From positions 62,001 through 126,000 of the forward strand of contig NIVC01001537.1 in NCBI GenBank assembly GCA_002269645.1: 64,000 bases of DNA, written 5' to 3'. Positions 603 through 62,060 of the stretch are shown here, one piece after another; position 1 is the first letter of the stretch, and each line of letters starts with the position of its first letter. The notes beneath the pieces are model-generated. The model was not told where the DNA came from. It saw only the letters and a list, made by a program, of their open reading frames with translations, and searched no databases. The translations under genes were made by a program, and so were the position numbers. Source of the DNA: Macrostomum lignano (taxonomy: Eukaryota).

Positions 603-3421
603 ATGGATGTATGCCTGATGTGCTTTTATGCGGTCTAAGAATTTTTTACTCAAAAAATTCTTCATTAGTAGTAATGTCACTCCTCACCACTGAATTATCT
701 ATAAGTAGTCGAGTTCTCTTGGAAATAAAAGTTACCAGAGTTTGTTATAAATTGTATCCATGAACTTGCAGAAATTTAAAGTGCTGCCATGCCGCGGTTT
801 CTAAAAAAGAAATCTGAATATTGATCAATGACTAGATAGATACTGTTTTGATCATGTTGCCCTGTCGCTATCGAAGACTATTAAAGTGTAGAGAAGTTTT
901 ATGAAGTCCGATGTTAACAACAAACGCATTCATAGTTTTATTTACTGTTTCCTGTGTGTATGGTTTGGTTTCTAGAATCGCTTTTTTATTTGCTACTGCT
1001 GCTAAGTGCTAAGTGCTAGCTACAGTTTCGGTCGGTCCTACTGCAGAAATGCAGTTATGTTACTTTACCTAACTGTTAATAGGCCTATTCAACCTGCTTC
1101 AATTTTTGGTTTTCCCTATTTTTACATGAATTTGTACTATATGTAGCCATGTATATGTCCTGAAAGGAAACCAGACAAGACAATCCATCGAAAAGTTGAT
1201 TTGTTGAAAGACTATTTGTAAAAAAGAAAGACATTTTATTGATTTCAGTATGGAAAATCTGCCAAAAAGAGATTTTTAAAACTATTATTGAATAAATGAT
1301 GAATAGAAGAGGGGTTGTATAGTTCATAAATGACAATGAATACTTGATATACTAAGCAGACTAGGCTAATTGGCAATTTTACTAGGGGCCTCCATACTAG
1401 CTAGAGGCTGCAGTGAAGGTTAGAGGCACAAGAACTAGTCCAAGTACCAAGGCTAGGGCCTAGGTTGTTCTTAGTATAGCACATTTAATAGACCTATGGC
1501 ATTTTATGTCAATAATACCTTTGTTTAAATTTTAGTCGTTTGTCTAAAATTTCCCTTTTTATAGAAAGGCCTAGGCCTATCTACAGAAATTTTACCACAT
1601 TAGTCCTATTGAGTGGCAGTTTTGTAATAAAAAAGCATTCATATTGTTAACATTTGTTTATTTACTTTTTGCAACTATATTCTTGTTTAAAATATATTTT
1701 GGATTTAAGCATACCTACAAAATTTAACAAAAAATTTAATTTATATGGCATAATTTTTTTTGATAAAATGTCTTATCATACATAGAATCATTTTTAAAAA
1801 TTGTCTTGTAGGTGATTAGTTAATTTAGTAAGTAGCATCATATTAACATGTTTAAATTATATTTATTAAAACTATTTAACTTGGCTTAAATAAAAAGTTT
1901 ATGAATTGATCTTATTTTAATACTATGATATAACTTAAGGCCTAGTGGATATCATGCACAATAGGCTAGAACAAAGAATAACTGATCAAAAACTTATGCC
2001 AATATATACTAAGCTTCTTATGACTTCTTATGGCTCTTATGATATGCCAATAGAAATATTATGAAAAGTATTAGGCTATGCCAACTTCTAATTATTAACC
2101 CCAAATTTAATACTAGAAGCATGATGATGTAGGACAATTAAAAAGACCTATCTATGATAGAAAAAGGATTAGGAATAAACAAGAAGAGATATAGAGAGAA
2201 AAAGAGGCTAAATGAAGAAAATAGAAAGGGAGAAGGGAGAGCAAATCTCAATCTAAATATTCAAAGAAATTTTTTTGAGATTAGACTAGTTATACACAAA
2301 AAATGTAAGTTTTGTTTTATAGTACTTGACAAAAAAGTCTACAAAATCTATTTCTTTAGATTAATAAATTGATAAAACGAATAATGAGCTAAAATCAAGT
2401 TCATATAATAAAACTTTTTTTGAATACCACATCACAGTATAGTCTATATCTATATACCTACATACATCTTTTATATATACAATAACACTGGACATTTAAA
2501 TCTTTTCATGCTACTTTAAGTAGCAAAAAGCATATTTTTATATTTGTACTTTACTGGCCTCATTTGAAACTTTAAAAGATAATTTGTATGCTTATTAAGA
2601 AAACTGCATTTTGCTTCTATTGCTTGCAGAAAGTTTGAAAGCTTTGGACCATTTTTAATTTTGTTTTAATTTTATTAACTACTTACAAATAGTAATAAAT
2701 CCATATTTTAGTGGTATCACAGATGTATTAAAGACATGCAATTTAAAGCAATGTCACATTTTTTAGCTGATATAAAGAATATACTTTTATTATTATACCT
2801 GGTTTGTATTGCAATTTGTATTGATGTCTACTGTAATAAAATATAACTATTTAGCCTTCTCCTTGTCCTAATCCAAAATCTAATAGCTCCTGAAATGCAG
2901 AGCTTAGCGAATCCCACGAATCTCCCCTGCATTTTCCTCTGTAGACTGTATCTCTCTATTCATTTTTCTCTTCTGCTCTTGCCCTGCCTACCATGTCTGC
3001 CTGTCCTGCACCCGCAGGCAGGCGCTGGGCTTAGGGGCGGAATAGCAGCTCTGTTGTCTTGCCTACCAGCCCAATATTATTCCTGAAAAGACTCTGAAGC
3101 TCACGGAGAGACAGAGAAAAAACTATGAGAATATGTGGGAAGGGAGGTCTGCCTTGTCTGCCTTGCGTTGCTGGGGCCCTCGCTCCATCCTTCCCTCTGT
3201 GACTATTCTGTCTCTCTCTGTCTCCAACCAGAAAAATCGATTTTTCTCCCTTCCCCATCATCCGCTGCTGCAGCAGCAGCACCTCGCCTCTGCTGCCACC
3301 CCATTGTTTAAGCGGCCTGTCCCGTCCTGCATGCCATCTTCCCTCTCTGGCTCTCCCCGTTCAACAGTCCCAACTCACAGTTTCCTAGGCTGCTTCCCCC
3401 GCTCTTGCTGTTTGTTTCTCC

Positions 3422-4782: not shown

Positions 4783-7700
4783 ATGCAACCCATCGCCGCA
4801 CTTTTCCGTTCAGACCGCAGTGTGCACCAAACCGACATGTCGTCTCGGCCGCAAAGCTCCGGCGTCAGGTCGCGCAGCGGCGCCGGCCGCCCGTCTTCGT
4901 CTCAGCAGCAGCTGCACGGCGGCAGCCAGGCCTGGTCAGCGGCCGGCGACGATGTTGACGTCGCCAATCCGACTGTGCTGGACCAGGAGCCCGAGGCCTG
5001 CCAGTCCGATAATCCGTTTGAGCATCCCGACGGTCAGACGGAGCCGGAGGTTGAGGAGGCCCACGGATGCTGGTTCCGCTTTAAGCGGGGCGTGCGAGGT
5101 GAGCAGCGAGGGATTTGATAGCGATGTGAGAGTGGCGAGTTTGATGGATAAACACAATAAGATTGGGTGAGATTTGATAAATAAACACAATAAGATTGGG
5201 TGAGATTTGATGAATAAACACAATAAGATTGGGCGAGTTTGATGGATAAACACAATAAGATTGGGTGAGATTTCATAAATAAACACAATAAGATTGGGTG
5301 AGATTTGATGGATAAACACAATATATCAGTATTGACAGATAAGATACCTCTCTTATTTTTAGCAAAAATCTAAGATTGGGTGAGATTTGATGAATAAACA
5401 CAATAAGATTGGGTGAGATTTGATGGATAAACACAATAAGATTGGGCGAGTTTGATGGATAAACACAATAAGATTGGGCGAGATTTGATGGATAAACACA
5501 ATAAGATTGGGTGAGATTTGATGGATAAACACAATAAGATTGGGCGAGATTTGATGGATAAACACAATAAGATTGGGTGAGATTTGATGGATAAACACAA
5601 TAAGATTGGGTGAGATTTGATGGATAAACACAATAAGATTGGGCGAGATTTGATGGATAAACACAATAAGATTGGGTGAGATTTGATGGATAAACACAAT
5701 AAGATTGGGTGAGATTTGATGAATAAACACAATAAGATTGGGTGAGATTTGATGGATAAACACAATAAGATTGGGTGAGATTTGATGGATAAACACATGA
5801 ATATTGGGTGAGATTTGATAAATAAACACATGAACATTAGGTGAGATTTGATGGATAAACACATGAATATTGGGTGAGATTTGATAAATAAACACATGAA
5901 CATTGGGTGAGATTTGATGGATAAACACATGAACATTGGGTGAGATTTGATAGATAAACACATGAATATTGGGTGAGATTTGATAAATAAACACATGAAC
6001 ATTAGGTGAGATTTGATAGATAAACACATGAACATTGGGTGAGATTTGATAAATAAACACATGAACATTAGGTGAGATTTGATAGATAAACACATGAACA
6101 TTGGGTGAGATTTGATGGATAAACACATGAACATTGGGTGAGATTTGTTGGATAAACACATGAACATTGGGTGAGATTTGATAAATAAACACATGAACAT
6201 TGGGTGAGATTTGATAGATAAACACATGAAAATTGGGTGAGATTTGATGGATAAACACATGAACATTGGGTGAGATTTGATAAATAAACACATGAACATT
6301 GGGTGAGATTTGATAGATAAACACATGAACATTGGGTGAGATTTGATAAATAAACACATGAACATTGGGTGAGATTTGATAGATAAACACATGAACATTG
6401 GGTGAGATTTGATAAATAAACACAACACAACCGGAAATTGGACGGCAGGGTCCAACCAGAATTTCTAACAAAGCTGCAATTCCCGCAAATCCCAACCAAG
6501 CCGCGTGGCTAACCAAGGACACGGTAGACGTGACCGGTGATACCGAATTGCGAATTAAGACCACCCTGAGGGAGCTGCTTCTGTACTGCGTCTACCTGAC
6601 TATCCTGTCCATATGTAAACAATACTGAAGTATTATAATAAAGAACTTTATTTTTTATTAATTAAATTTTGGAAGTCACCGTAACGTATTAATATTTTTC
6701 TTAATTTTTCACATTTTCGCTGCAATTTATTAAATCACAATATTAGCTGGAGGTTCACTACTATTCACCAAATTTAGCAATCTGGCGAACCAACATGACT
6801 GAGGACACTCGCGAGGACAGGGAGCTGTACATCAAGACCACCCTCCGGGAGCTCATTGTCTATTTGTTCTTTCTCATTGTTCTCATGGTTTGTAAGTGAT
6901 TTTTCACGAGACTTTTTTGTTCATTTTTTTATCTCAGTTTTATTGATTCACTTTCAAATGTGGGATTTCATTGTTTTCGGTTACTCAGTGTCACGTGATA
7001 GGCGGTTTCCTCTAAATACCTTAGTCCCAATTAGAAACTCTCTGAGATCCCAATCCCATTTAGAATCCCAGAGATCCCAATTAGAATCCATGAGATCCCA
7101 ATCCCAATTAGAATCCCAGAGATCCCAATCCCAATTACAATCTCAGAGATCCCAATCCCAATTAGAATCCCAGAGATCCCAATCCCAATTACAATCTCAG
7201 AGATTCCAATCCCAATTAGAATCACAGAGATCCCAATCCCAATTAGAATCCATGAGATCCCAATCCCAATTAGAACTCAGAGATCTCAATCCCATTTAGA
7301 ATCCCACAGATCCCAATCCTAATTAGAATCCCAGAGATTCCAATCCCAATTAGAATCACAGAGATCCCAATCCCAATTAGAATCCATGAGATCCCAATCC
7401 CAATTAGAATCCATGAGATCCCAATCCCAATTACAATCTCAGAGATTCCAATCCCAATTAGAATCCCAGAGATCCCAATCCCAATTAGAATCCCAGAGAT
7501 CCCAATCCCAATTACAATCTCAGAGATTCCAATCCCAATTAGAATCACAGAGATCCCAATCCCAATTAGAATCCATGAGATCCCAATCCCAATTAGAATC
7601 CATGAGATCCCAATCCCAATTACAATCTCAGAGATTCCAATCCCAATTAGAATCACAGAGATCCCAATCCCAATTAGAATCCATGAGATCCCAATCCCAA

Positions 7701-9149
7701 TTACAATCTCAGAGATTCCAATCCCAATTAGAATCACAGAGATCCCAATCCCAATTAGAACTCAGAGATCTCAATCCCATTTAGAATCCCACAGATCCCA
7801 ATCCTAATTAGAATCCCAGAGATCCCAATCCCAATTAGAATCCCAGAGATCCCAATCCCAATTAGAATCCCAGAGATCCCAATCCCAATTGAAATACTTG
7901 AGATCCCAATCCCAATTAGAATTACAGAGATCCCAATCCCAGTTAGAATTCCAGAGATCCCAATCCCAATTAGAATTCCAGAGATCCCAATCCCAACTAG
8001 AGTCCCAAACGATCCCAATCAAAATCCCAAAGATCCCACTTGGGTCCCGAAGATTCGAATCCCGGCTGAGACACCAATGGAGTATGGAACCAATAAGCAA
8101 AATATTGAATAACAACAACTTCAGTGGCGTTCGGCATGACCAGCTCCACCATGTACTACTTCACCAGCGTGATGCAGGCCCAGTTCGACCAGGCTCCCAA
8201 CTCGGAGACCCAGACCACCTTTTCCACCGCGACTACCATCGCCGATTGGTGGCGGGTAAGTGTGCAATATTCAAGCTTGTGTGAAGCTTCGAGTTTGTGT
8301 GAAGCTTCTAGTTTGTGTGAAGCTTCGAGTTTGTGAAGCTTCCAGTTTGTGTGAAGCTTCTAGTTTGTGTGAAGCTACCAGCTTGTGTGACGCTTCTAGT
8401 TTGTGTGCAAGCTTCCAGCTTGTGTGAAGCTTCTAGTTTGTGTGAAGCTTCGAGCTTGTGTGAAGCTTCGAGTTTATGAAGCTTCGAGCTTGTGTGAAGC
8501 TTCTAGTTTGTGTGAAAGCTTCAAGTTTGTGTGAAGCTTCTAGTTTGTGTGAAGCTTTGAGCTTGTGTGAAGCTTCGAGTTTGTGTGAAAGCTTCAAGCC
8601 TGTGAAAGTTTCGAGCTTGTGAAACGCCCTCACTTATCGTTGGCTTGCAGTTCGTGAAGGGCCCGCTGCTGGAGGGCCTGTACGTGACCAACTGGTACAA
8701 CAACCTGAACTTTAGCGACTCTCGCGAGGTGAATTTTGTCTACTACGAGAACAAACTGCTCGGAGTGCCCCGCCTGCGCCAGGTAAAAGTGCGCAATGAC
8801 AGCTGCTCCATTGCGGACGACTTTAAAAACGAAATCAAAGCCTGCTACGCCATGTACAGCCCCGGCGTTGAGGAGAAAAGCCCGTTCGGCTATATGAACT
8901 CCACGGCTTGGAACCACACCACCGAGAAGGAGCTGGACGGCCGCAGCTACGCTGGCCAGATTGCCAGCTACGATGGCGGCGGCTACTACGTGGACTTGAC
9001 TAGGAACCGTGACGACTCGGCCGCTATCATTGAGGAGCTGTTCAAGGTGAGGCATGGGCCTGCAATAGCAGCATTTGATTTGGTCCAACAAGCATCAATT
9101 TGATCCATTGCGGCTCTATAGCTTCACCCTTAGATTTTTGACTATCTAG

Positions 9150-9240
<91 letters not shown>

Positions 9241-9280
9241 CCTATCTATCTATGTATCTATCTATCTATCTATCCATCTG

Positions 9281-9372
<92 letters not shown>

Positions 9373-9386
9373 CCTATCTATCTATG

Positions 9387-9418
<32 letters not shown>

Positions 9419-9424
9419 CATCTG

Positions 9425-9516
<92 letters not shown>

Positions 9517-12500
9517 CCTATCTATCTATGTATCTATCTATCTATCTATCCATCTGTCTATCTATCTACTGCAGAAAGCTCTATATTGTATTTCTTAAAC
9601 ACACCAGGGCCTGTGGATCGATCGCGGCACCCGGGTAGCCTTCGTGGACTTCACTGTGTACAATGCCAACATCAACCTGTTCTGCGTAGTGAAGCTGGTC
9701 ATGGAGTTCCCGGCCACCGGGGGCGCCATTCCGTCATCAGAGTACCGCACGGTCAAGCTGCTGCGCTACGTGGAGCCTCGGGACTACGTTGTGCTGATCT
9801 GCGAGATCATCTTCATGCTGTTCATCTGCTACTACGTTGTTGAGGAGGTCATCGAGATTAAGCGGCACAAGCTGGGCTACTTCAAGAGCTTCTGGAACTG
9901 GCTGGACATCCTGGTCATCATCATCTCGCTGGTGTGCGCCGGGTTCAACGTCTACCGCACCATCGCCGTTGGCAACAAGCTCACCGAGCTGCTCAAAGAC
10001 GAGTCGAAATTTCCCGACTTCGATTTCCTGTCCTACTGGCAGCTGCAGTTCAACAACGCCATCGCCATCACCGTGTTCTTCGCCTGGGTGAAGATCTTCA
10101 AGTACATCAGCTTCAACAAGACCATGACCCAGCTCAGCTCCACCCTGGGCGCCTGCGCCAAGGATCTGGTCGGCTTCGCGGTGATGTTCTTCATCATCTT
10201 CTTCGCCTTCGCCCAGCTGGGCTACCTGATCTTCGGCACCCAGGTGAAAGACTTCCGCGAATTCCAGCAGGCCATCTTCACGCTGTTCCGCATCATTCTG
10301 GGCGACTTCGATTTCCACGAATTGGAGAACGCCCACCGCGTCCTGGGGCCAATCTTCTTCCTGCTGTACGTGTTCTTCGTGTTCTTCGTGCTGATCAACA
10401 TGTTCTTGGCCATCATTAACGACACCTACAGCGAGGTGAAGAGCGACCTGGCTAATCAGCCGAACGACTTCGAAATGACCGACTATTTCAAAGAGGTAAA
10501 CGGCATGAGTAGCTATGTCTTGTTTTTATGAGTTTAATTCCTCGGCATCTAATTAAGAACAAAAATTTAGAAATCTTTTATTCAAGGGTAAACAGCGAGA
10601 GTAGCCATGCCCCTTTTCCATTGTTAAATTCTTCGCCATCTGATTAGGGGCTTGTATTAGGATATCCTACCATTTCAAACAGGTAAACGGCGGGAGTAAC
10701 TCTGTATCTAGTAGTGTATCTAGTTTGATAATTACATTCCCCGTCATCTAATTAGTGACTATTTAATGAGTTAAACAACAGAGGGAGTAACTATACCTGT
10801 ATCATTAGTTGAATTCTTCGTCATCTAATTAGTCTACTTATCTTAATGAGTAGTATAAAGCAGTATAATAGTGGAAAATTGTGTTTTCTTCTTATCAGAC
10901 ATTGTTTTGTTTGGTTGCTATGACTCATGATCATTAATAATGCAAGTAATGCTCAAGTTTCACTCCATCTTAATTAATTATTTATCGAAATCAATCGGTG
11001 CAAATTAAGCGACACTAATTACCTACTGAATAATTTATTAGCCAGTGCAGTGCTGAATAATTAACTGTTTAATTTGCTATGTTTTGTCAGCGCGCCGGGA
11101 AAGTGATGGACAAGCTCAACATTAAGCGCGACAAGATTATCGACATTCAGAAGGCAATGCAGTCTGCTGACGTAAACAATGACCGCCAGCTGGACTTTGA
11201 GGAGTGGCGCGCCGAGCTCAAGATGTGAGTGGGGACTGGGGTGGAATGGGTGTCTGCTGGGTGGACTGGGTGTCTGTTGGGGTGGACTGGGTGTCTGTTG
11301 GGGTGGACTGGGTGTCTGTTGGGGTGGACTGGGTGTCTGTTGGGGTGGACTGGTTGTCTGTTGGTGTGGAATGAGGTGTCTGCTGGGGTGGACTGGTTGT
11401 CTGTTGGGGTGGACTAGGTGTCTGTTGGGGTGGACTGAGTGTCTGTTGGGGTGGACTGGGTGTCTGTTGGGGTGGACTGGTTGTCTGTTAGGTTGGACTG
11501 GGTGTCTGCTGGGGTGGACTGGGTGTCTGTTGGGGTGGACTGGGTGTCTGTTAGGTTGGACTGGGTGTCTGTTGGGGTGGACTGGGTGTCTGTTGGGGTG
11601 GACTGGGTGTCTGTTGGGGTGGACTGGTTGTCTGTTGGTGTGGACTGGGTGTCTGTTGGGGTGGACTGGTTGTCTGTTGGGGTGGACTGGTTGTCTGTTG
11701 GTGTGGAATGAGGTGTCTGCTGGGGTGGACTGGTTGTCTGTTGGGGTGGACTAGGTGTCTGTTGGGGTGGACTGAGTGTCTGTTGGGGTGGACTGGGTGT
11801 CTGTTGGGGTGGACTGGTTGTCTGTTAGGTTGGACTGGGTGTCTGTTGGGGTGGACTGAGTGTCTGTTGGGGTGGAATGGGTGTCTGTTAGGTTGGACTG
11901 GGTGTCTGTTGGGGTGGACTGGTTGTCTGTTAGGTTGGACTGGGTGTCTGCTGGGGTGGACTGGGTGTCTGTTGGGGTGGACTGGGTGTCTGTTAGGTTG
12001 GACTGGGTGTCTGTTGGGGTGGACTGGGTGTCTGTTGGGGTGGACTGAGTGTCTGTTGGGGTGGACTGAGTGTCTTTTTTGGTGGACTGAGTGTCTGTTG
12101 GGGTGGACTGAGTGTCTGTTGGGGTGGACTGGGTGTCTGCTGGGTTGGACTGGGTGTCTGTTGGGGTGGATTTTGTGTCTGCTGTGGTGGACTGGGTGTC
12201 TGATGAGGTGGACTGGGCTCGATTGAAGTCGTTGCTTGTATTTAAAAATTAATTAATTGCATTGGCAAGCAGCTTAATGAAATATTGAGTACATATGGAC
12301 TTGAAATTTAATAGTACATTGTGTTTAAAGATCGTCGTCAACTTTAATAGTACACTGTGTGTATAGAGATTAGCATCTATTTTAATAGTGCATTGTGTTT
12401 ATAGAGATTGGCGTGTACTTTAATAGTACATTGTGTGTAGACATTAGCGTGTACTTTAATAGTACATTGTGTGTAGACATTAGCGTGTACTTTAATAGTA

Positions 12501-15424
12501 CATTGTGTGTAGACATTAGCGTGTACTTTAATAGTACACTGTGTGTATAGAGATTAGCATCTATTTTAATAGTGCATTGTGTTTATAGAGATTGGCGTGT
12601 ACTTTAATAGTACATTGTGTGTAGACATTAGCGTGTACTTTAATAGTACATTGTGTGTAGAGATTGGCGTGTACTTTAATAGTACATTGTGTGTAGAGAT
12701 TGGCGTGTACTTTAATAGTACATTGTGTGTAGAGATTGGCGTGTACTTTAATAGTACATTGTGTGTAGAGATTGGCGTGTACTTTAATAGTACATTGTGT
12801 GTAGAGATTGGCGTGTACTTTAATAGTACATTGTGTGTAGAGATTGGCGTGTACATGGCGAGACTAACACCTCTCGAGCCTGCTTTAAATAGGCCTAATT
12901 ACTAAATCCTTTCCTGCTTCCAGGCGAGGCTACGCTGACGGCGAAATCGAGGCGATGTTTGCCAAATATGACGTCGACGGCGACCGAGTGCTGGACGAGG
13001 AGGAGCAGCGCAGGATGACCAGCGAATTGGAGGGCCAGAAGGTTAGCAATGAGTCTGTATTCATTTCGCATAGCAACTATTTAATGAAGCGTATTATTAT
13101 TAATAATAATTTATTTAACATTGTGTCCCCCAATTCACAGCGTAATTTGGAAACCAATGCAGTAGGAGTGAAGCTTTATTATTGCTTATTTATAATTATT
13201 TATTGTGTACCCGTTGCCATGTAAAATCTGTTGTATTCTGTTTGTTGGTTGTTCCTCATGTATAATTTGTGTGCTTCCGACTATCTTGATGTAACATGTA
13301 AAAAATGATAATTTTGCTAACAAGGCTGAGCCTCCTGTACTGCCAGCATCTCTAAATTGCACGTTAATTATGCAATTAAAAATGTAACAACTGCACCGAT
13401 GTTCGGGTACCGCCTGTATCGATTGTGTGTACAAGTGTCTTGTATCTGTCAGTGTCCTGTAAGTGTCCTGTGTCTATATGATAGACGTTTCTAAATGAAC
13501 CCAAATCTAATCTGTATCTATCCCAGATCTAATCCGCATCCATCCCAGTTCTAATCCGTATTTCCTAGATCTAATCCGCATCTATCCCAGGTCTAATTCG
13601 TATCTATCCCAGATCTAATCCGCATCCATCCCAGTTCTAATCCGTATTTCCTAGATCTAATCCGCATCTATCCCAGGTCTAATCCGTATCTATCCCAGAT
13701 CTAATCCGCATCCATACCAGTTCTAATCCGTATTTCCTAGATCTAATCCGCATCTATCCCCGGTCTAATCCGTATCTATCCCAGATCTAATCCGCATCTA
13801 TCCCAGATCTAATCCGCATCTATCCCAGTTCTAATCCGCACCTATCCCAGGTCTAATCCGTATCTATCCCAGATCTAATCCGCATCTATCCCAGATCTAA
13901 TCCGCATCTATCCCAGTTCTAATCCGCACCTATCCCAGGTCTAATCCGTATCTATCCCAGATCTAATCCGCATCTATCCCAGGTCTAATCCGTATCTATC
14001 CCAGATCTAATCCGCATCTATCCCAGATCTAATCCGTATTTCCTAGATCTAATCCGCATCTATCCTAGATCTAATCCGTATCTATCCCAGGTCTAATCCC
14101 TATCTATCCCAGATCTAATCAGCATCTATCTCAGATCTAATCCGCATCCATCCCAGATCTAATCCGCATCTATCCCAGATCTAATCCGCATCTATCCCAG
14201 ATCTAATCCGCATCTATCCCATATCTAATCCGCATCTATCCCAGATCTAATCCGCATCTATCCCAGATCTAATCCGCATCTATCTCAGATCTAATCCGCA
14301 TCTATCCCAGATCTAATCCGCATCTATCTCAGATCTAATCCGCATCTATCCCAGATCTAATCCGCATCTATCCCAGGTCTAATCCGTATCTATCCCAGAT
14401 CTAATTCGCATCTATCCCAGGTCTAATTTGTATCTATCCCAGTTTTAATCCGTATCTATCCCAGGTCTAATCCGCATCTATCCCAGATCTAATCCGTATC
14501 TATCCCAGGTCTAATCCGCATCTATCCCAGATCTAATCCGTATCTATCCCAGTTCTAATCCGTATATCCCAGATCTAATCAGCATCTATCCCAGTTCTAA
14601 TCCGTATTTCCTAGATCTAATCCGTATCTATCCCAGATCTAATCCGCATCTATCCCAGATCTAATCCGTATCTATCCCAGGTCTAATCCGTATCTATCCC
14701 AGATCTAATCCGTATCTATCCCAGTTCTAATCCGCATCTATCCCAGATCTAATCCACATCTATCCTATATCTAATCCGCATCTATCCTATATCTAATCTG
14801 CATCTATCCCAGATCCAATCCGCATCTATCCTATATCTAATCCGCATCTATCCCAGCTCTATCCGAATCTATCCCAGCTCTAATCCACATCTATCCCAAC
14901 CGCCGCAGGCCGCCCTAAACGACCAGATCCAATCCGAGCGCGACCGTCCAGCCAGCGCCCGCTCAACCGCCGACCTCGGCGCCGACGCCGACGACCGCCT
15001 CAGGAGCTCTCGACGGGGCGTCAGCGGCGGCGGCGGCGGCGGCGGCGGCGCCGGCGTGTCTTCGGAGGAGTTCACGGTGCTGGCCAGGCGCGTGGACCGC
15101 ATGGAGCACAGCATCGGCAGCATCGTGTCGAAGATTGACGCCGTGCTGGTGAAGCTGGACACGATGGAGAAGGCGAAGCTGCGCAGGCGGGAGACCATGA
15201 GCAAGCTGCTGGACTCCATCAGCGAGAATGAGGCTGTGTCAGACGAGCAGAAACGCGAACAGATGGAGCAGCTGGTGCGCGAGGAGCTGGAGCGCTGGGA
15301 GAGCGAGCCGGTTGACGCGGCGCCTGCCTCCTCGCGGGCCGCCACCGCGCGCGGCCGATCAGCCGGCGCCTCGCGTCCGGGTAGTGCGGCCGGCAGCGGC
15401 AGCGGCGCGGAGGCTCGCTACTGA
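4783..15424 (+). CDS. pkd2: Polycystin-2 family TRPP cation channel (PKD2/PKD2L1-like), about 870 aa, 8 coding exons
   Basis: Exons 4783-5098, 6778-6891 (or 6501-6614), 8125-8255, 8651-9046, 9608-10495, 11091-11224, 12924-13041, 14909-15424. All junctions are GT-AG and phase-consistent (sum 2613 nt). Motifs: [41 protein letters not shown]...[13 protein letters not shown], pore [29 protein letters not shown] hands, and coiled coil [24 protein letters not shown]. The start could instead be the ATG at about 4837 (MSSRPQSS). Confidence 0.96.
5140..6420. repeat. 33-bp minisatellite (aagattgggtgagatttgatggataaacacaat), two sub-arrays, pkd2 intron
   Basis: 33-bp period; the unit switches from cacaataagattgg to cacatgaacattgg near 5790. 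Confidence 0.92.
6501..6614 (+). CDS. pkd2: Alternative (probably mutually exclusive) pkd2 exon 2a
   Basis: AG at 6499-6500, GT at 6615-6616; 114 nt, phase 1-1, identical in length and phase to exon 6778-6891. Translates (A)[37 protein letters not shown], paralogous to (A)[37 protein letters not shown]. Confidence 0.75.
7040..8010. repeat. 27-bp minisatellite (tcccaattagaatcccagagatcccaa), pkd2 intron
   Basis: Visible 27-bp period. Confidence 0.9.
8270..8620. repeat. About 18-bp minisatellite (gaagcttctagtttgtgt), pkd2 intron
   Basis: Visible period with a HindIII site in each unit. Confidence 0.88.
9145..9568. repeat. (TATC)n microsatellite, pkd2 intron
   Basis: Direct reading. Confidence 0.97.
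10496..10835. repeat. Four diverged copies of a roughly 90-bp unit starting at the exon-5 splice donor
   Basis: gtaaac...gagta(g/a)c...catct(a/g)atta recurs with GT at 10496, 10588, 10683 and 10770. Confidence 0.6.
11230..12220. repeat. 21-bp G-rich minisatellite (ttggggtggactgggtgtctg), pkd2 intron
   Basis: 21-bp period starting immediately after the donor at 11225. Confidence 0.92.
12300..12860. repeat. 39-bp minisatellite (core aatagtacattgtgtgtagagattggcgtgtacttt), pkd2 intron
   Basis: 13-aa periodicity in the overlapping ORFs. Confidence 0.9.
13500..14900. repeat. 22-bp minisatellite (ctaatccgcatctatcccagat), about 60 copies, ending at the exon-8 acceptor
   Basis: 22-bp period; the array runs up to the AG at 14907-14908. 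Confidence 0.93.
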
Positions 15425-15837
15425 GCTGCCGGGGCCGACTGACTGACCTTGAGAGATATCTATTTATAATATTTTATTGAGAGATTTCCAAGCCCTGAAC
15501 GCCAATTATATAATTGCCAACTGCTCCCACTCACAAGCCGTCCGAAGTTGAAGCTTATTCTATGATATTTGAAATCTCTGGCTTTTACGGATAAACATGG
15601 CTCTGAATGTATTTTTAACTGACAGCTGATCGAGGAACCTTTTAATGGGCTGATTTTAACATAAAAATTATTTTTATCGATGCGACCTGAACCTATTTCT
15701 GACTGCTGTGTGTCAACGAATGAAATATCGTTAATAAATCTCTTGATAAATTCCATTCCTTCTTGGCAATCCAAAATGTAGCATCGCTCACAAACCTGCG
15801 ACCTGTTTCGTGTCCGCTTCTTTTGTAACTGGTCGAT

Positions 15838-17838
15838 TGGGGGCGCCAGCTGAAGGATTGGGGAACGCCAGCTGAAGGATTGGGGAGGGGGCGCCAGCTG
15901 AAGGATTGGGGGTGCCAACTGAAGGATTGGGGGCGCCAGCTGAAGGATTGGGGGTGCCAACTGAAGGATTGGGGACGGGGCGCCAGCTGAAGGATTGGGG
16001 GGCGCCAACTGAAGGATTGGGGGAGGGGGCGCCAGCTGAAGGATTGGGGGTGCCAACTGAAGGATTGGGGGTGCCAACTGAAGGATTGGGGGCGCCAGCT
16101 GAAGGATTGGGGGTGCCAACTGAAGGATTGGGGGTGCCAACTGAAGGATTGGGGGCGCCAGCTGAAGGATTGGGGGTGCCAACTGAAGGATTGGGGGTGC
16201 CAACTGAAGGATTGGGGGCGCCAGCTGAAGGATTGGGGGTGCCAACTGAAGGATTGGGGGTGCCAACTGAAGGATTGGGGGTGCCAACTGAAGGATTGGG
16301 GGTGCCAACTGAAGGATTGGGGGACGGGGCGCCAGCTGAAGGATTGGGGGGCGCCAACTGAAGGATTGGGGGACGGGGCGCCAGCTGAAGGATTGGGGGG
16401 CGCCAACTGAAGGATTGGGGGAGGGAGCGCCAGCTGAAGGATTGGGGGACGGGGCGCCAGCTGAAGGATTGGGGGGCGCCAACTGAAGGATTGGGGGAGG
16501 GGGCGCCAGCTGAAAATTGGGGGGCGCCAGCTGAAGGATTGGGGGTCGCCAACTGAAGGATTGGGGGGGGCGCCAGCTGAAGGATTGGGGGTGCCAACTG
16601 AAGGATTGGGGAACGCCAGCTGAAGGATTGGGGAACGCCAGCTGAAGGATTGGGGAGGGGGCGCCAGCTGAAGGATTGGGGGTGCCAACTGAAGGATTGG
16701 GGGCGCCAGCTGAAGGATTGGGGGTGCCAACTGAAGGATTGGGGACGGGGCGCCAGCTGAAGGATTGGGGGCGCCAACTGAAGGATTGGGGGAGGGGGCG
16801 CCAGCTGAAGGATTGGGGGTGCCAACTGAAGGATTGGGGGTGCCAACTGAAGGATTGGGGGCGCCAGCTGAAGGATTGGGGGTGCCAACTGAAGGATTGG
16901 GGTGCCAACTGAAGGATTGGGGGCGCCAGCTGAAGGATTGGGGTGCCAACTGAAGGATTGGGGGTGCCAACTGAAGGATTGGGGGCGCCAGCTGAAGGAT
17001 TGGGGGTGCCAACTGAAGGATTGGGGGTGCCAACTGAAGGATTGGGGGTGCCAACTGAAGGATTGGGGGTGCCAACTGAAGGATTGGGGGACGGGGCGCC
17101 AGCTGAAGGATTGGGGGGCGCCAACTGAAGGATTGGGGGACGGGGCGCCAGCTGAAGGATTGGGGGCGCCAACTGAAGGATTGGGGGAGGGAGCGCCAGC
17201 TGAAGGATTGGGGGACGGGGCGCCAGCTGAAGGATTGGGGGCGCCAACTGAAGGATTGGGGGAGGGGGCGCCAGCTGAAAATTGGGGGGCGCCAGCTGAA
17301 GGATTGGGGGTCGCCAACTGAAGGATTGGGGGGGCGCCAGCTGAAGGATTGGGGGTGCCAACTGAAGGATTGGGGGACGGGGCGCCAGCTGAAGGATTGG
17401 GGGGCGCCAGCTGAAGGATTGGGGGGCGCCAGCTGAAGGATTGGGGGAGGGGCGCCAGCTAAAGGATTGGGGGCGCCAGCTGAAGGATTGGGGGAGGGGG
17501 CGCCAGCTGAAAGATTGGGGGAGGGGCGCCAGCTGAAGGATTGGGGGGCGCCAACTGAAGGATTGGGGGGCGCCAGCTGAAGGATTGGGGGACGGGGCGC
17601 CAGCTGAAGGATTGGGGGGCGCCAACTGAAGGATTAGGGGGCGCCAGCTGAAGGATTGGGGGAGGGGGCGCCAGCTGAAGGATTGGGGGACGGGGCGCCA
17701 GCTGAAGGATTGGGGGAGGGGCGCCAGCTGAAGGATTGGGGGACGGGGCGCCAGCTGAAGGATTGGGGGGAGGGGGCGCCAGATGAAGGATTGGGGGAGG
17801 GGGCGCCAGCTGAAGGATTGGGGGCGCCAGCTGAAGGA
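15838..17838. repeat. G-rich compound minisatellite (21-28 bp; ggattggggg(c/t)gcca(g/a)ctgaa)
   Basis: About 2-kb array between the convergent pkd2 and pacifastin-like genes, with a G4-G6 run in every unit. Confidence 0.93.
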
Positions 17839-18167: not shown

Positions 18168-18854
18168 TCAGAACCGCTGGGCCAGCCACTGCATCAGAGA
18201 GCCGCGCTGCCTGCGGCCGCGCCGCCTGTTGCCGCGCCTGCCACCCTCGATATTGGCGCCCAGACTGCGGCAGTGCCGCTTGAACTCGCGCTTGCTGCCG
18301 ACGAACTCCGGGCAGGTGTTGCTGGTCTCGCACTGGGCAGCCGTGGCCGGCGTGTCCGGGCACTGACACTGGTTGCAGCCGTCGAAGAACTTCACTCCCG
18401 GCTGCTGGCGGCACAGCTTGCGCTCCTTGAAGCACTTGATTGGCCAGCGCTCGGGTTCAGCAGAGCCACCGGCAGCGGCGGCGGCGGCGGCTCGCCTCTC
18501 CATGCGGCGCTTGTAGCGGAGCTTCTTCTTCTCGACCCGGCGGGCCAGCTTCTGGCAGAAGCGGTCGGCCCTGCGTTTCAGCCGGGGCTCCAGGATCTCC
18601 GTCTGGCGCGGGCAGGACTTGATGGTGCACGTGGCCTGGCCGGCGTTGGAGCCGCAGGTGCACAGGTTGCAACCGTCCGACACCTTGAAGCCGACAAGAG
18701 AAGCGTCTCCGTTGCAGATGCTCTGCGCCTTCAGGTCCGAGCACGTGACCTCCGGCTTGTTCCGGCCGCGACCGCCGCCCCGGCGCCCGAATCTGCGGCC
18801 GTAGGCGGCCGAAGACACCGCTAGGACCAACGCCAGCAGTAGTACCAGGCGCAT
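18168..18854 (-). CDS. Secreted Arg/Gly-rich protein with two pacifastin-like Cys domains (putative serine protease inhibitor), 228 aa, single exon
   Basis: Signal peptide MRLVLLLALVLAVSSAAYG. Domain 1, C-x13-CNLCTCGSNAGQATCTIKSC, resembles the pacifastin pattern C-x(9-12)-CNxCxC-x(2-3)-G-x(3-4)-CT-x3-C with slightly longer spacing. Domain 2, CRQQPGVKFFDGCNQCQCPDTPATAAQCETSNTC, is degenerate. High GC3; TATA upstream; AATAAA downstream (18011-18016). Confidence 0.8.
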   Translation of the reverse strand: MRLVLLLALVLAVSSAAYGRRFGRRGGGRGRNKPEVTCSDLKAQSICNGDASLVGFKVSDGCNLCTCGSNAGQATCTIKSCPRQTEILEPRLKRRADRFCQKLARRVEKKKLRYKRRMERRAAAAAAAGGSAEPERWPIKCFKERKLCRQQPGVKFFDGCNQCQCPDTPATAAQCETSNTCPEFVGSKREFKRHCRSLGANIEGGRRGNRRRGRRQRGSLMQWLAQRF

Positions 18855-61699: not shown

Positions 61700-62060
61700 C
61701 TACATTTAATCCTCTTCATTTGCATGCAATCTGCTACAAATTCAAGCAAAGTGTTAGCAGCCACTCTCTTTAAACTAACCAATCGTCCTTATCTTAGTCT
61801 GGTTGCTATGGAAACTCGGCGAATGTGGAATTATCAATGGCGCAATTTTGTTCTTCCTCCGGGAAACGAAGGGTCGCAGTGCGAACTGAAATCACGGACG
61901 CATTACGGAGAGGCGAAGAATCGAAAATCAAAGCAGCAGCCTCGTGACAAAAGAGCTGTTTTTTTAATTTCCTCATTCAGCGAAAGGAAATTAGAAAGCT
62001 TAGCAGAATTACAAGAAGGCCTCGTTGAAGATGACACTGTGGCTTAGCAAATAAATTGAA
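61700..62060. promoter_or_regulatory. Conserved non-coding block, copy 2: octamer ATTTGCAT (61718-61725) plus X-box GTTGCTATGGAAAC (61802-61815)
   Basis: Exact match to the GTHNYY-AT-RRNAAC X-box consensus; paralogous to 58225-58500. Confidence 0.6.

Follow-up and report, generated by a model that had tools for sequence, protein, structure and literature searches.

A probable mutually exclusive exon pair for the pre-S1/S1 segment of a PKD2-family channel gene in Macrostomum lignano

Do two neighboring exons of a flatworm polycystin gene encode interchangeable versions of the pre-S1/S1 segment of the channel, or is one of them a dead copy of the other? We addressed this question in a stretch of 64,000 nucleotides (nt) from Macrostomum lignano (GenBank assembly GCA_002269645.1, contig NIVC01001537.1, forward-strand positions 62,001 to 126,000), hereafter the window, in which all positions are counted from its first letter. 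The window holds Mlig004710g1 (BOX15_Mlig004710g1), a PKD2/TRPP-family channel gene that is host to exons 2a and 2b. Exon 2a (6501..6614, + strand) is an unannotated, a-type pre-S1/S1 exon and exon 2b (6778..6891, +) the canonical, b-type one found in all annotated products; both are 114 nt long with phase 1-1, and a 163-nt, AT-rich intron lies between them (6615..6777, +; the a-b intron). We consider it likely that 2a can functionally stand in for 2b, and the two exons probably form a functional, mutually exclusive pair.

Each exon is open in only one of the three frames, the one that joins exon 1 (4783..5098, +; donor GAG/gtgagc, ending in phase 1) to exon 3 (8125..8255, +), which encodes the end of S1 and the start of the S1-S2 polycystin/TOP domain and provides the acceptor to which 2a and 2b would both be spliced. 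Exon 2a is bounded by the acceptor cccaaccaag/ and the donor TAT/gtaaac, exon 2b by ccaaatttag/ and TTT/gtaagt. Aligned without gaps, they are identical at 64 of 114 nucleotides and at 20 of 39 amino acids (aa), including the motif IKTTLREL, which both retain together with a tryptophan at position 3. Over a 19-residue span, Kyte-Doolittle hydropathy peaks at 2.09 in 2a and at 2.75 in 2b. Adjacent on one strand of one gene, both align with PKD2 exon 2 across animals.

An earlier note on this DNA had described two 114-nt, phase 1-1 exons 163 nt apart sharing IKTTLREL, and its coordinates and sequences proved exact; 2a had indeed been overlooked, being unannotated, with all annotated products of the gene using 2b. 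Its view that 2a has the weaker splice signals holds only marginally: the 2a donor matches the consensus at 5/9 positions, fewer than that of 2b (6/9) or those of the constitutive exons (6-8/9), but its intronic hexamer GTAAAC is identical to that of constitutive exon 5 and its polypyrimidine content of 0.61 falls within the range of the gene (0.50-0.78). An in-phase AG at 6472-6473, also pointed out there, exists and would add 9 in-frame residues if used; the annotated a-type exon of the paralog Mlig009305, described below, begins at the homolog of 6501.

The gene model into which these exons fit has eight coding exon positions. With either 2a or 2b it gives an open reading frame (ORF) of 870 aa, or 852 aa from the annotated start, which is probably the second methionine of exon 1, at 4837. 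In a database search, the model spliced with 2b was 100% identical to M. lignano PAA66722.1 (P0001) from MSSRPQ on, which confirms all of its junctions. The Pfam records of PAA66722.1 are PF08016, PF20519, PF00520 and PF00036 (PKD_channel, polycystin, ion-transport and EF-hand). Searching the PDB with phmmer yielded near-equal matches to PKD2L1 (6DU8, E=3e-209) and PKD2 (5K47, E=2e-200), and matches to the solved structures of the two proteins spanned E-values of 1e-198 to 1e-209, the core of six transmembrane (TM) segments being homologous. The near equality of these matches argues that the gene is a TRPP channel that predates the vertebrate duplications. The PKD2 identity put forward by the earlier note is thereby borne out by the identity to PAA66722.1, the Pfam domains and the structure matches.

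A second pair of this kind is present in the paralog Mlig009305 (PAA56728.1; locus L001), whose protein is 65% identical to that of the window gene. Its a exon (12188-12301) and b exon (12461-12574) are both 114 nt long, of phase 1-1 and flanked by AG and GT, and the two genes agree in the a-then-b order, in exon size and phase, in the length of the intervening intron (159 vs 163 nt) and in the a-type states TKDT.DV and EL[RK]I. The derived states common to the a-type exons are K6, D7, V11 and a basic residue at position 18. Unlike in the window gene, the annotated transcript of Mlig009305 uses the a-type exon, which is found in all three of its NCBI models (P0005, P0124 and P0125), and the hidden, unannotated copy is the b-type exon, 81% identical to 2b of the window. 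In a gene tree, all five PKD2 paralogs of M. lignano fall into a single clade (96% bootstrap); the tree gave no firm branching order inside it and did not recover the two pair-bearing genes as sisters. Mlig009158 and Mlig005060 have a b-type exon only and short first introns. The simplest history would be that the exon was duplicated once, before the paralogs radiated, and that copies were later lost.

Comparisons among homeologs and between paralogs both bear on selection. Across the three homeologs of the window gene, 2a has a single variable site in 114, which is synonymous, and 2b has 0 in 114, against 16 of 335 columns (4.8%) in the flanking and intervening introns; one-sided Fisher tests against the intron columns give p=0.044 for 2a, p=0.008 for 2b and p=0.0016 for both combined. 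The a exons of the two paralogs align at z=9.8 against shuffled sequences and their homology is therefore far above chance; the 80 nt of intron 5' of the a exon cannot be aligned between the paralogs (z=0.9). Between 2a of the window and the a exon of the paralog, the ratio of nonsynonymous (dN) to synonymous (dS) divergence is 0.24, with dS saturated, and differences are distributed over the codon positions as 13/7/18. When the 39 observed substitutions were placed at random, the result was free of stop codons and kept at least 21 of 37 amino acids identical in only 0.06% of trials (P=0.0006). Tajima relative-rate comparisons of 2a with the expressed a exon of the paralog, using four b-type outgroups, gave counts of 16 v 16, 15 v 11, 17 v 13 and 17 v 11, so 2a is not accelerated over the expressed a-type exon. 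By the same test the hidden b exon of the paralog is likewise no faster than 2b of the window, and its dN of 0.15 lies among those of expressed b exons (0.13-0.20). These patterns indicate that 2a is under coding constraint and is not a dead copy. An unconserved dead duplicate, the alternative that the earlier note had raised, is countered by the retention of the pair in Mlig009305 and of 2a in three homeologs. Since selection has kept both exons intact, alternative splicing most likely chooses between them.

The same exon has been doubled elsewhere. Human PKD2 exon 2 (c.596-709) is 114 nt long and has the same phase (PMC11355194), and in a structure-search alignment the M. lignano exon 2 falls on residues 199-236 of the human protein. 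The same 114-nt exon was found in Ptychodera, Tubulanus, Lingula and Branchiostoma, and because its boundaries are identical in human and in these animals they must be ancient. Ptychodera and Tubulanus have single copies. Tandem copies annotated in RefSeq as alternative isoforms lie at 6236-6530 of the Branchiostoma lanceolatum locus (L006) and at 2833-3306 of the Lingula anatina locus (L008). According to RefSeq, isoforms X1 and X2 of B. lanceolatum and of B. floridae are each 871 aa long and differ only here, carrying MWATRQTEEFHGDKEQYVKTTLRELFTYIIFIVILCI or IWATRLADDVEPGTDAYIKIILRELWTYLAFITILSL (XP_066304091/XP_066304092; XP_035669432/XP_035669433). L. anatina has two PKD2-like genes, each with X1 and X2 isoforms that differ at exon 2 (XP_013419422/23; XP_013419430/31), those of the second gene being P0108 and P0286. 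In both animals the RefSeq isoforms include one exon or the other and never both.

These pairs resemble that of M. lignano in that a homologous exon 2 (114 nt, phase 1-1) is present as two tandem copies with canonical splice sites, and differ from it in layout. The canonical copy is upstream in amphioxus, with an inter-exon intron of 67 nt, whereas M. lignano has its divergent copy upstream, with 163 nt; in Lingula gene 1 a divergent copy of 117 nt lies upstream, with an intron of 243 nt, and divergent copies in Lingula have 1-2 extra codons. RefSeq pairs of equal length in molluscs (Crassostrea, Mya and Mercenaria) differ at the C-terminal tail only and not in S1. The divergent exons of the three phyla did not cluster across phyla in an identity matrix, and we set aside deep orthology among them, which this matrix does not support; independent duplication in the three phyla would be the economical reading, an ancient origin being possible as well. 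The earlier note knew of no such pair in vertebrate PKD2 genes, which agrees with the lack of an entry for PKD2 in the text of the human exon-substitution catalogue (PMC9741552), but pairs are annotated in a cephalochordate and a brachiopod. Our literature search found no description of a mutually exclusive exon pair in PKD2 or TRPP.

Several observations weigh against a functional, mutually exclusive pair. We found no transcript, junction or protein model of the window gene with 2a in it: all five of its deposited products (homeologs g1, g2 and g3 plus two UniRef models) use 2b, and an exact look-up did not find the 852-aa 2a isoform in the protein collection. When a representative library was searched with the 2a peptide, the matches were limited to the paralog and to exon-2 ORF fragments in the genomes of other animals; these negatives are weak. 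The homeolog test for 2a alone gives p=0.044, and dN among a-type exons is about twice that among b-type exons. A UniRef model of Mlig009305 (P0150, from an older annotation) carries the a and b exons together, and some co-inclusion is possible. The a-b intron, at 163 nt, could be spliced out and double inclusion would stay in frame, so neither feature would enforce exclusivity. Searches with the 110-aa junction peptide and with the 301-aa N-terminal part of the 2a isoform produced no 2a match, but these word-indexed searches also missed the known P0001 and are hence uninformative. As for the deposited products, the M. lignano annotation was built from RNA sequencing (RNA-seq) data with StringTie and TACO at an isoform fraction of 0.75 (PMC5730564), so a minor isoform would have been dropped. 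Where the earlier note had proposed two channel isoforms, the homologous alternative versions of pre-S1/S1 and the coding constraint on 2a stand, and the deposited products speak for 2b only.

The rival explanation that survives best is that 2a is a silent relic: after the paralogs had been duplicated, the window gene would have kept b and Mlig009305 would have kept a, and the unused partners would be slowly decaying. This reading, which we think unlikely, fits the deposited products (all 2b for the window gene, all a for the NCBI products of the paralog), the donor of 2a, whose consensus match is the weakest in the gene, and the higher dN of a-type exons, but it has to contend with two unused exons that have each kept their length, open frame and splice sites although synonymous divergence is saturated. 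Decay is hard to see in the unused b exon of the paralog, whose dN is that of an expressed b exon, or in 2a, which has not accelerated relative to an expressed a exon, has taken a single synonymous change among homeologs whose introns vary at 4.8% of columns, and resembles its paralogous counterpart to a degree that neutral placement of substitutions seldom produced (P=0.0006). The all-2b record itself loses weight given that the annotation pipeline discards minor isoforms.

It is less probable still, and in our view doubtful, that 2a serves as a cassette exon and is spliced in alongside 2b, or that both are at times skipped, so that a non-functional product with two copies of S1, or with none, would down-regulate the channel. 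The a-b intron is long enough for removal, and the frame remains open when both exons are included (909 aa) or both skipped (832 aa), so that neither product would be cleared by nonsense-mediated decay (NMD); the earlier remark that joint inclusion would duplicate S1 is supported. A poison exon, however, needs no conserved S1, whereas purifying selection has preserved the tryptophan, IKTTLREL and a hydrophobic helix in 2a, and the Lingula and amphioxus isoforms are of the one-or-the-other kind. P0150, the one model that holds both exons, predates the RNA-seq-based Mlig_3_7 annotation, whose models P0005, P0124 and P0125 contain the a exon only. That 2a might be a chance ORF or a repeat-derived artefact can be dismissed, since, for all the minisatellites that fill the surrounding introns, 2a lies in unique sequence, is homologous to PKD2 exon 2 across animals and is conserved with intact splice sites in three homeologs and one paralog.

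If 2a and 2b are exclusive alternatives, something should keep them apart, and we considered the known means in turn. In steric exclusivity, as between exons 2 and 3 of alpha-tropomyosin, a donor-to-branch-point distance below ~50-60 nt blocks removal of the intron. This is ruled out in M. lignano, where the a-b intron is 163 nt long and the branch-point-like sites of 2b lie >90 nt from the 2a donor; in the 67-nt amphioxus intron, a tactaac branch point places its A 33 nt from the donor, within the steric limit, and steric exclusion is plausible for that pair. Enforcement by NMD is ruled out because 114 nt is divisible by 3 and the 909-aa and 832-aa ORFs are open. So is U2/U12 incompatibility, all sites being of the U2 type and all donors GTRAG-like or GTAAAC, with no /ATATCC or /GTATCC. 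A search for docking and selector structures found only short, AT-rich inverted repeats at chance density, and a hairpin over the 2b donor was not significant (z from -1.5 to -0.85 across the three homeologs), with its equivalent in the paralog (z=-0.4) no more stable than shuffles. Pairing of the minisatellites of introns 1 and 2 to loop out the exon cluster was rejected, as their duplex energy does not stand out from that of other arrays or of shuffled tiles.

The a-b intron itself has retained some similarity between the paralogs (6615-6777 vs L001 12302-12460; z=4.1), concentrated in four shared blocks, AAAnAACTTTATT, TTAATTTTnCAC, AATCACA and TTCACnAAAT. These blocks may be splicing-regulatory elements. 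Two of the four are changed in homeolog g3. The 100 nt 3' of the b exon align weakly between the paralogs (z=2.0).

We propose that a tandem duplication of an ancestral 114-nt exon 2 in Mlig004710 gave rise to 2a and 2b. Each copy would encode a full version of the segment: the pre-S1 gating tryptophan (human W201), an acidic linker of 14 residues, the invariant IKTTLREL and, of S1, the inner two thirds. Splicing either 2a or 2b between exons 1 and 3 would then yield two 870-aa channels that differ only in this module, with 2b as the default in bulk RNA and 2a minor or restricted to certain cell types, and with the preference reversed in Mlig009305. The choice between two exons with weak donors (5/9 and 6/9) would be made by trans-acting regulators, possibly through the partly conserved a-b intron, and mis-spliced in-frame products would presumably be cleared as misfolded protein. 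Inclusion of 2a in the window gene, and its exclusivity, are what we infer from sequence.

The swapped segment is not a passive one, as it holds the pre-S1 tryptophan (human W201) and most of S1. Contact of this tryptophan with the TRP-like lysine is needed for gating of TRPP2 and TRPP3 and is disrupted by phosphatidylinositol 4,5-bisphosphate (PMC6483072). The tryptophan and the equivalent of the TRP-like lysine are both retained in the window gene, and the differences between the isoforms fall in the 14-residue linker and in inner S1. The natural expectation is that a swap would alter how the voltage-sensor-like domain gates, senses lipids or contacts its partners; the earlier note had suggested that trafficking, partnering with PKD1 or gating might change. 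In the S1 part of 2a (6588-6611), C30, T34 and S37 stand at i, i+4 and i+7 and form a polar stripe on one helix face. In the divergent exon of amphioxus, position 34 is likewise T or S and position 37 is S, and the a-type exon of Mlig009305 is without this stripe.

Three phyla keeping two versions of one exon, whether independently or from an ancient event, would make pre-S1/S1 a natural tuning module of polycystins. More tentatively, we regard it as possible, though short of probable, that the swap is an old or repeatedly reinvented way of tuning TRPP channels across Bilateria, with a role in ciliated sensory cells, which gene duplication replaced in vertebrates. If so, the swap in flatworm and brachiopod would predate lineage-specific gene duplications, the divergent S1 would set the channels of certain ciliated sensory cells apart in gating, lipid sensitivity or partner specificity, and vertebrates would have exchanged a splice switch for the duplicated genes PKD2, PKD2L1 and PKD2L2. 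Such pairs would also supply naturally matched isoforms for structure-function work that need no mutagenesis design, and since M. lignano is tractable by transgenesis, the use of 2a and 2b by cell type can be tested directly. There is an annotation gap as well: one exon of each pair is unannotated in each paralog (the a-type here, the b-type in Mlig009305), because transcript-based annotation keeps dominant isoforms only.

To complete the gene model, the remaining exons were located by tblastn with human PKD2, which served as a probe only, and their splice sites were then read. Exon 4 (8651..9046, +) encodes polycystin domain, and exon 5 (9608..10495, +; 296 codons) extends from the end of that domain through S2-S6 and the pore to the TRP-like region, which holds the K688 equivalent. 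Exons 6 (11091..11224, +; EF-hand region) and 7 (12924..13041, +; EF-hand) were matched by the probe, to which exon 8 (14909..15424, +; C-terminal coiled coil and stop codon) is 61% identical. Between exons 7 and 8 lies a 21-nt cassette microexon (13141..13161, +; acceptor cacag/, donor /gtagga), cgtaatttggaaaccaatgca, encoding RNLETNA, which the deposited g2 and g3 products (P0121 and P0122) include and the g1 product (P0001) skips.

Apart from the short a-b intron, the introns of the gene are each filled by a minisatellite of their own, with up to 107 copies. The intron-1 array (5140..6425) has a 33-nt unit in ~38 copies and ends 75 nt upstream of 2a, and the intron-2 array (7025..8020), rich in CCCAAT, has a 27-nt unit in ~37 copies. 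Further arrays lie at 8260-8623 (18-nt unit), 9142-9568 (4 nt), 11237-12217 (21 nt), 12307-12854 (36 nt) and 13500-14898 (22 nt). The CCCAAT-rich array of intron 2 and the GGGTG-rich array of intron 6 are strongly complementary (RNAduplex, -148 kcal/mol per 200 nt). Downstream of PKD2 there is a cysteine-rich ORF of 228 aa (18168-18854, - strand), and the homeologous loci (L004 and L005) have the same neighbor gene, with a weak Pfam match to a pacifastin inhibitor. A 274-aa ORF at 53696-54520 (+) contains the tyrosine-kinase catalytic motifs HRDVAARN and DLG and probably represents one exon of a gene for a receptor-type kinase. Long frames open on both strands (15460-17625 and many others) were rejected as genes, being translations of tandem repeats such as PILQLAP/QSFSWRP.

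Exon swapping is a known route to the tuning of ion channels, and the amphioxus and Lingula isoforms are already computationally annotated in RefSeq. Substitution of tandem-duplicated exons is enriched in ion channels and has arisen convergently at the same exon across phyla (PMC9741552; also PMC9013439 and PMC12772994), the examples among six-TM cation channels being SCN exon 5a/5b and the exon pairs of CACNA1, with a convergent origin in different phyla (Copley 2004, as summarized in PMC9741552; PMC12772994). The M. lignano pair differs from these in belonging to a TRPP and not a Nav or Cav channel, in covering pre-S1 and S1 and not S3-S4 or S6, and in being known here from genomic sequence; nor was a conserved competing RNA structure found around it. 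Vertebrate PKD2, PKD2L1 and PKD2L2 likewise combine differing pre-S1/S1 segments with a conserved TRPP core, but do so by means of separate genes. With the SCN and CACNA1 pairs, the two exons of the window share their architecture, in which homologous exons lie side by side, agree in length and phase and encode alternative versions of a TM segment of a voltage sensor or voltage-sensor-like domain, and they also share purifying selection on both copies, recurrence at the same exon in distant animals and the presence of duplicated exons beside duplicated genes.

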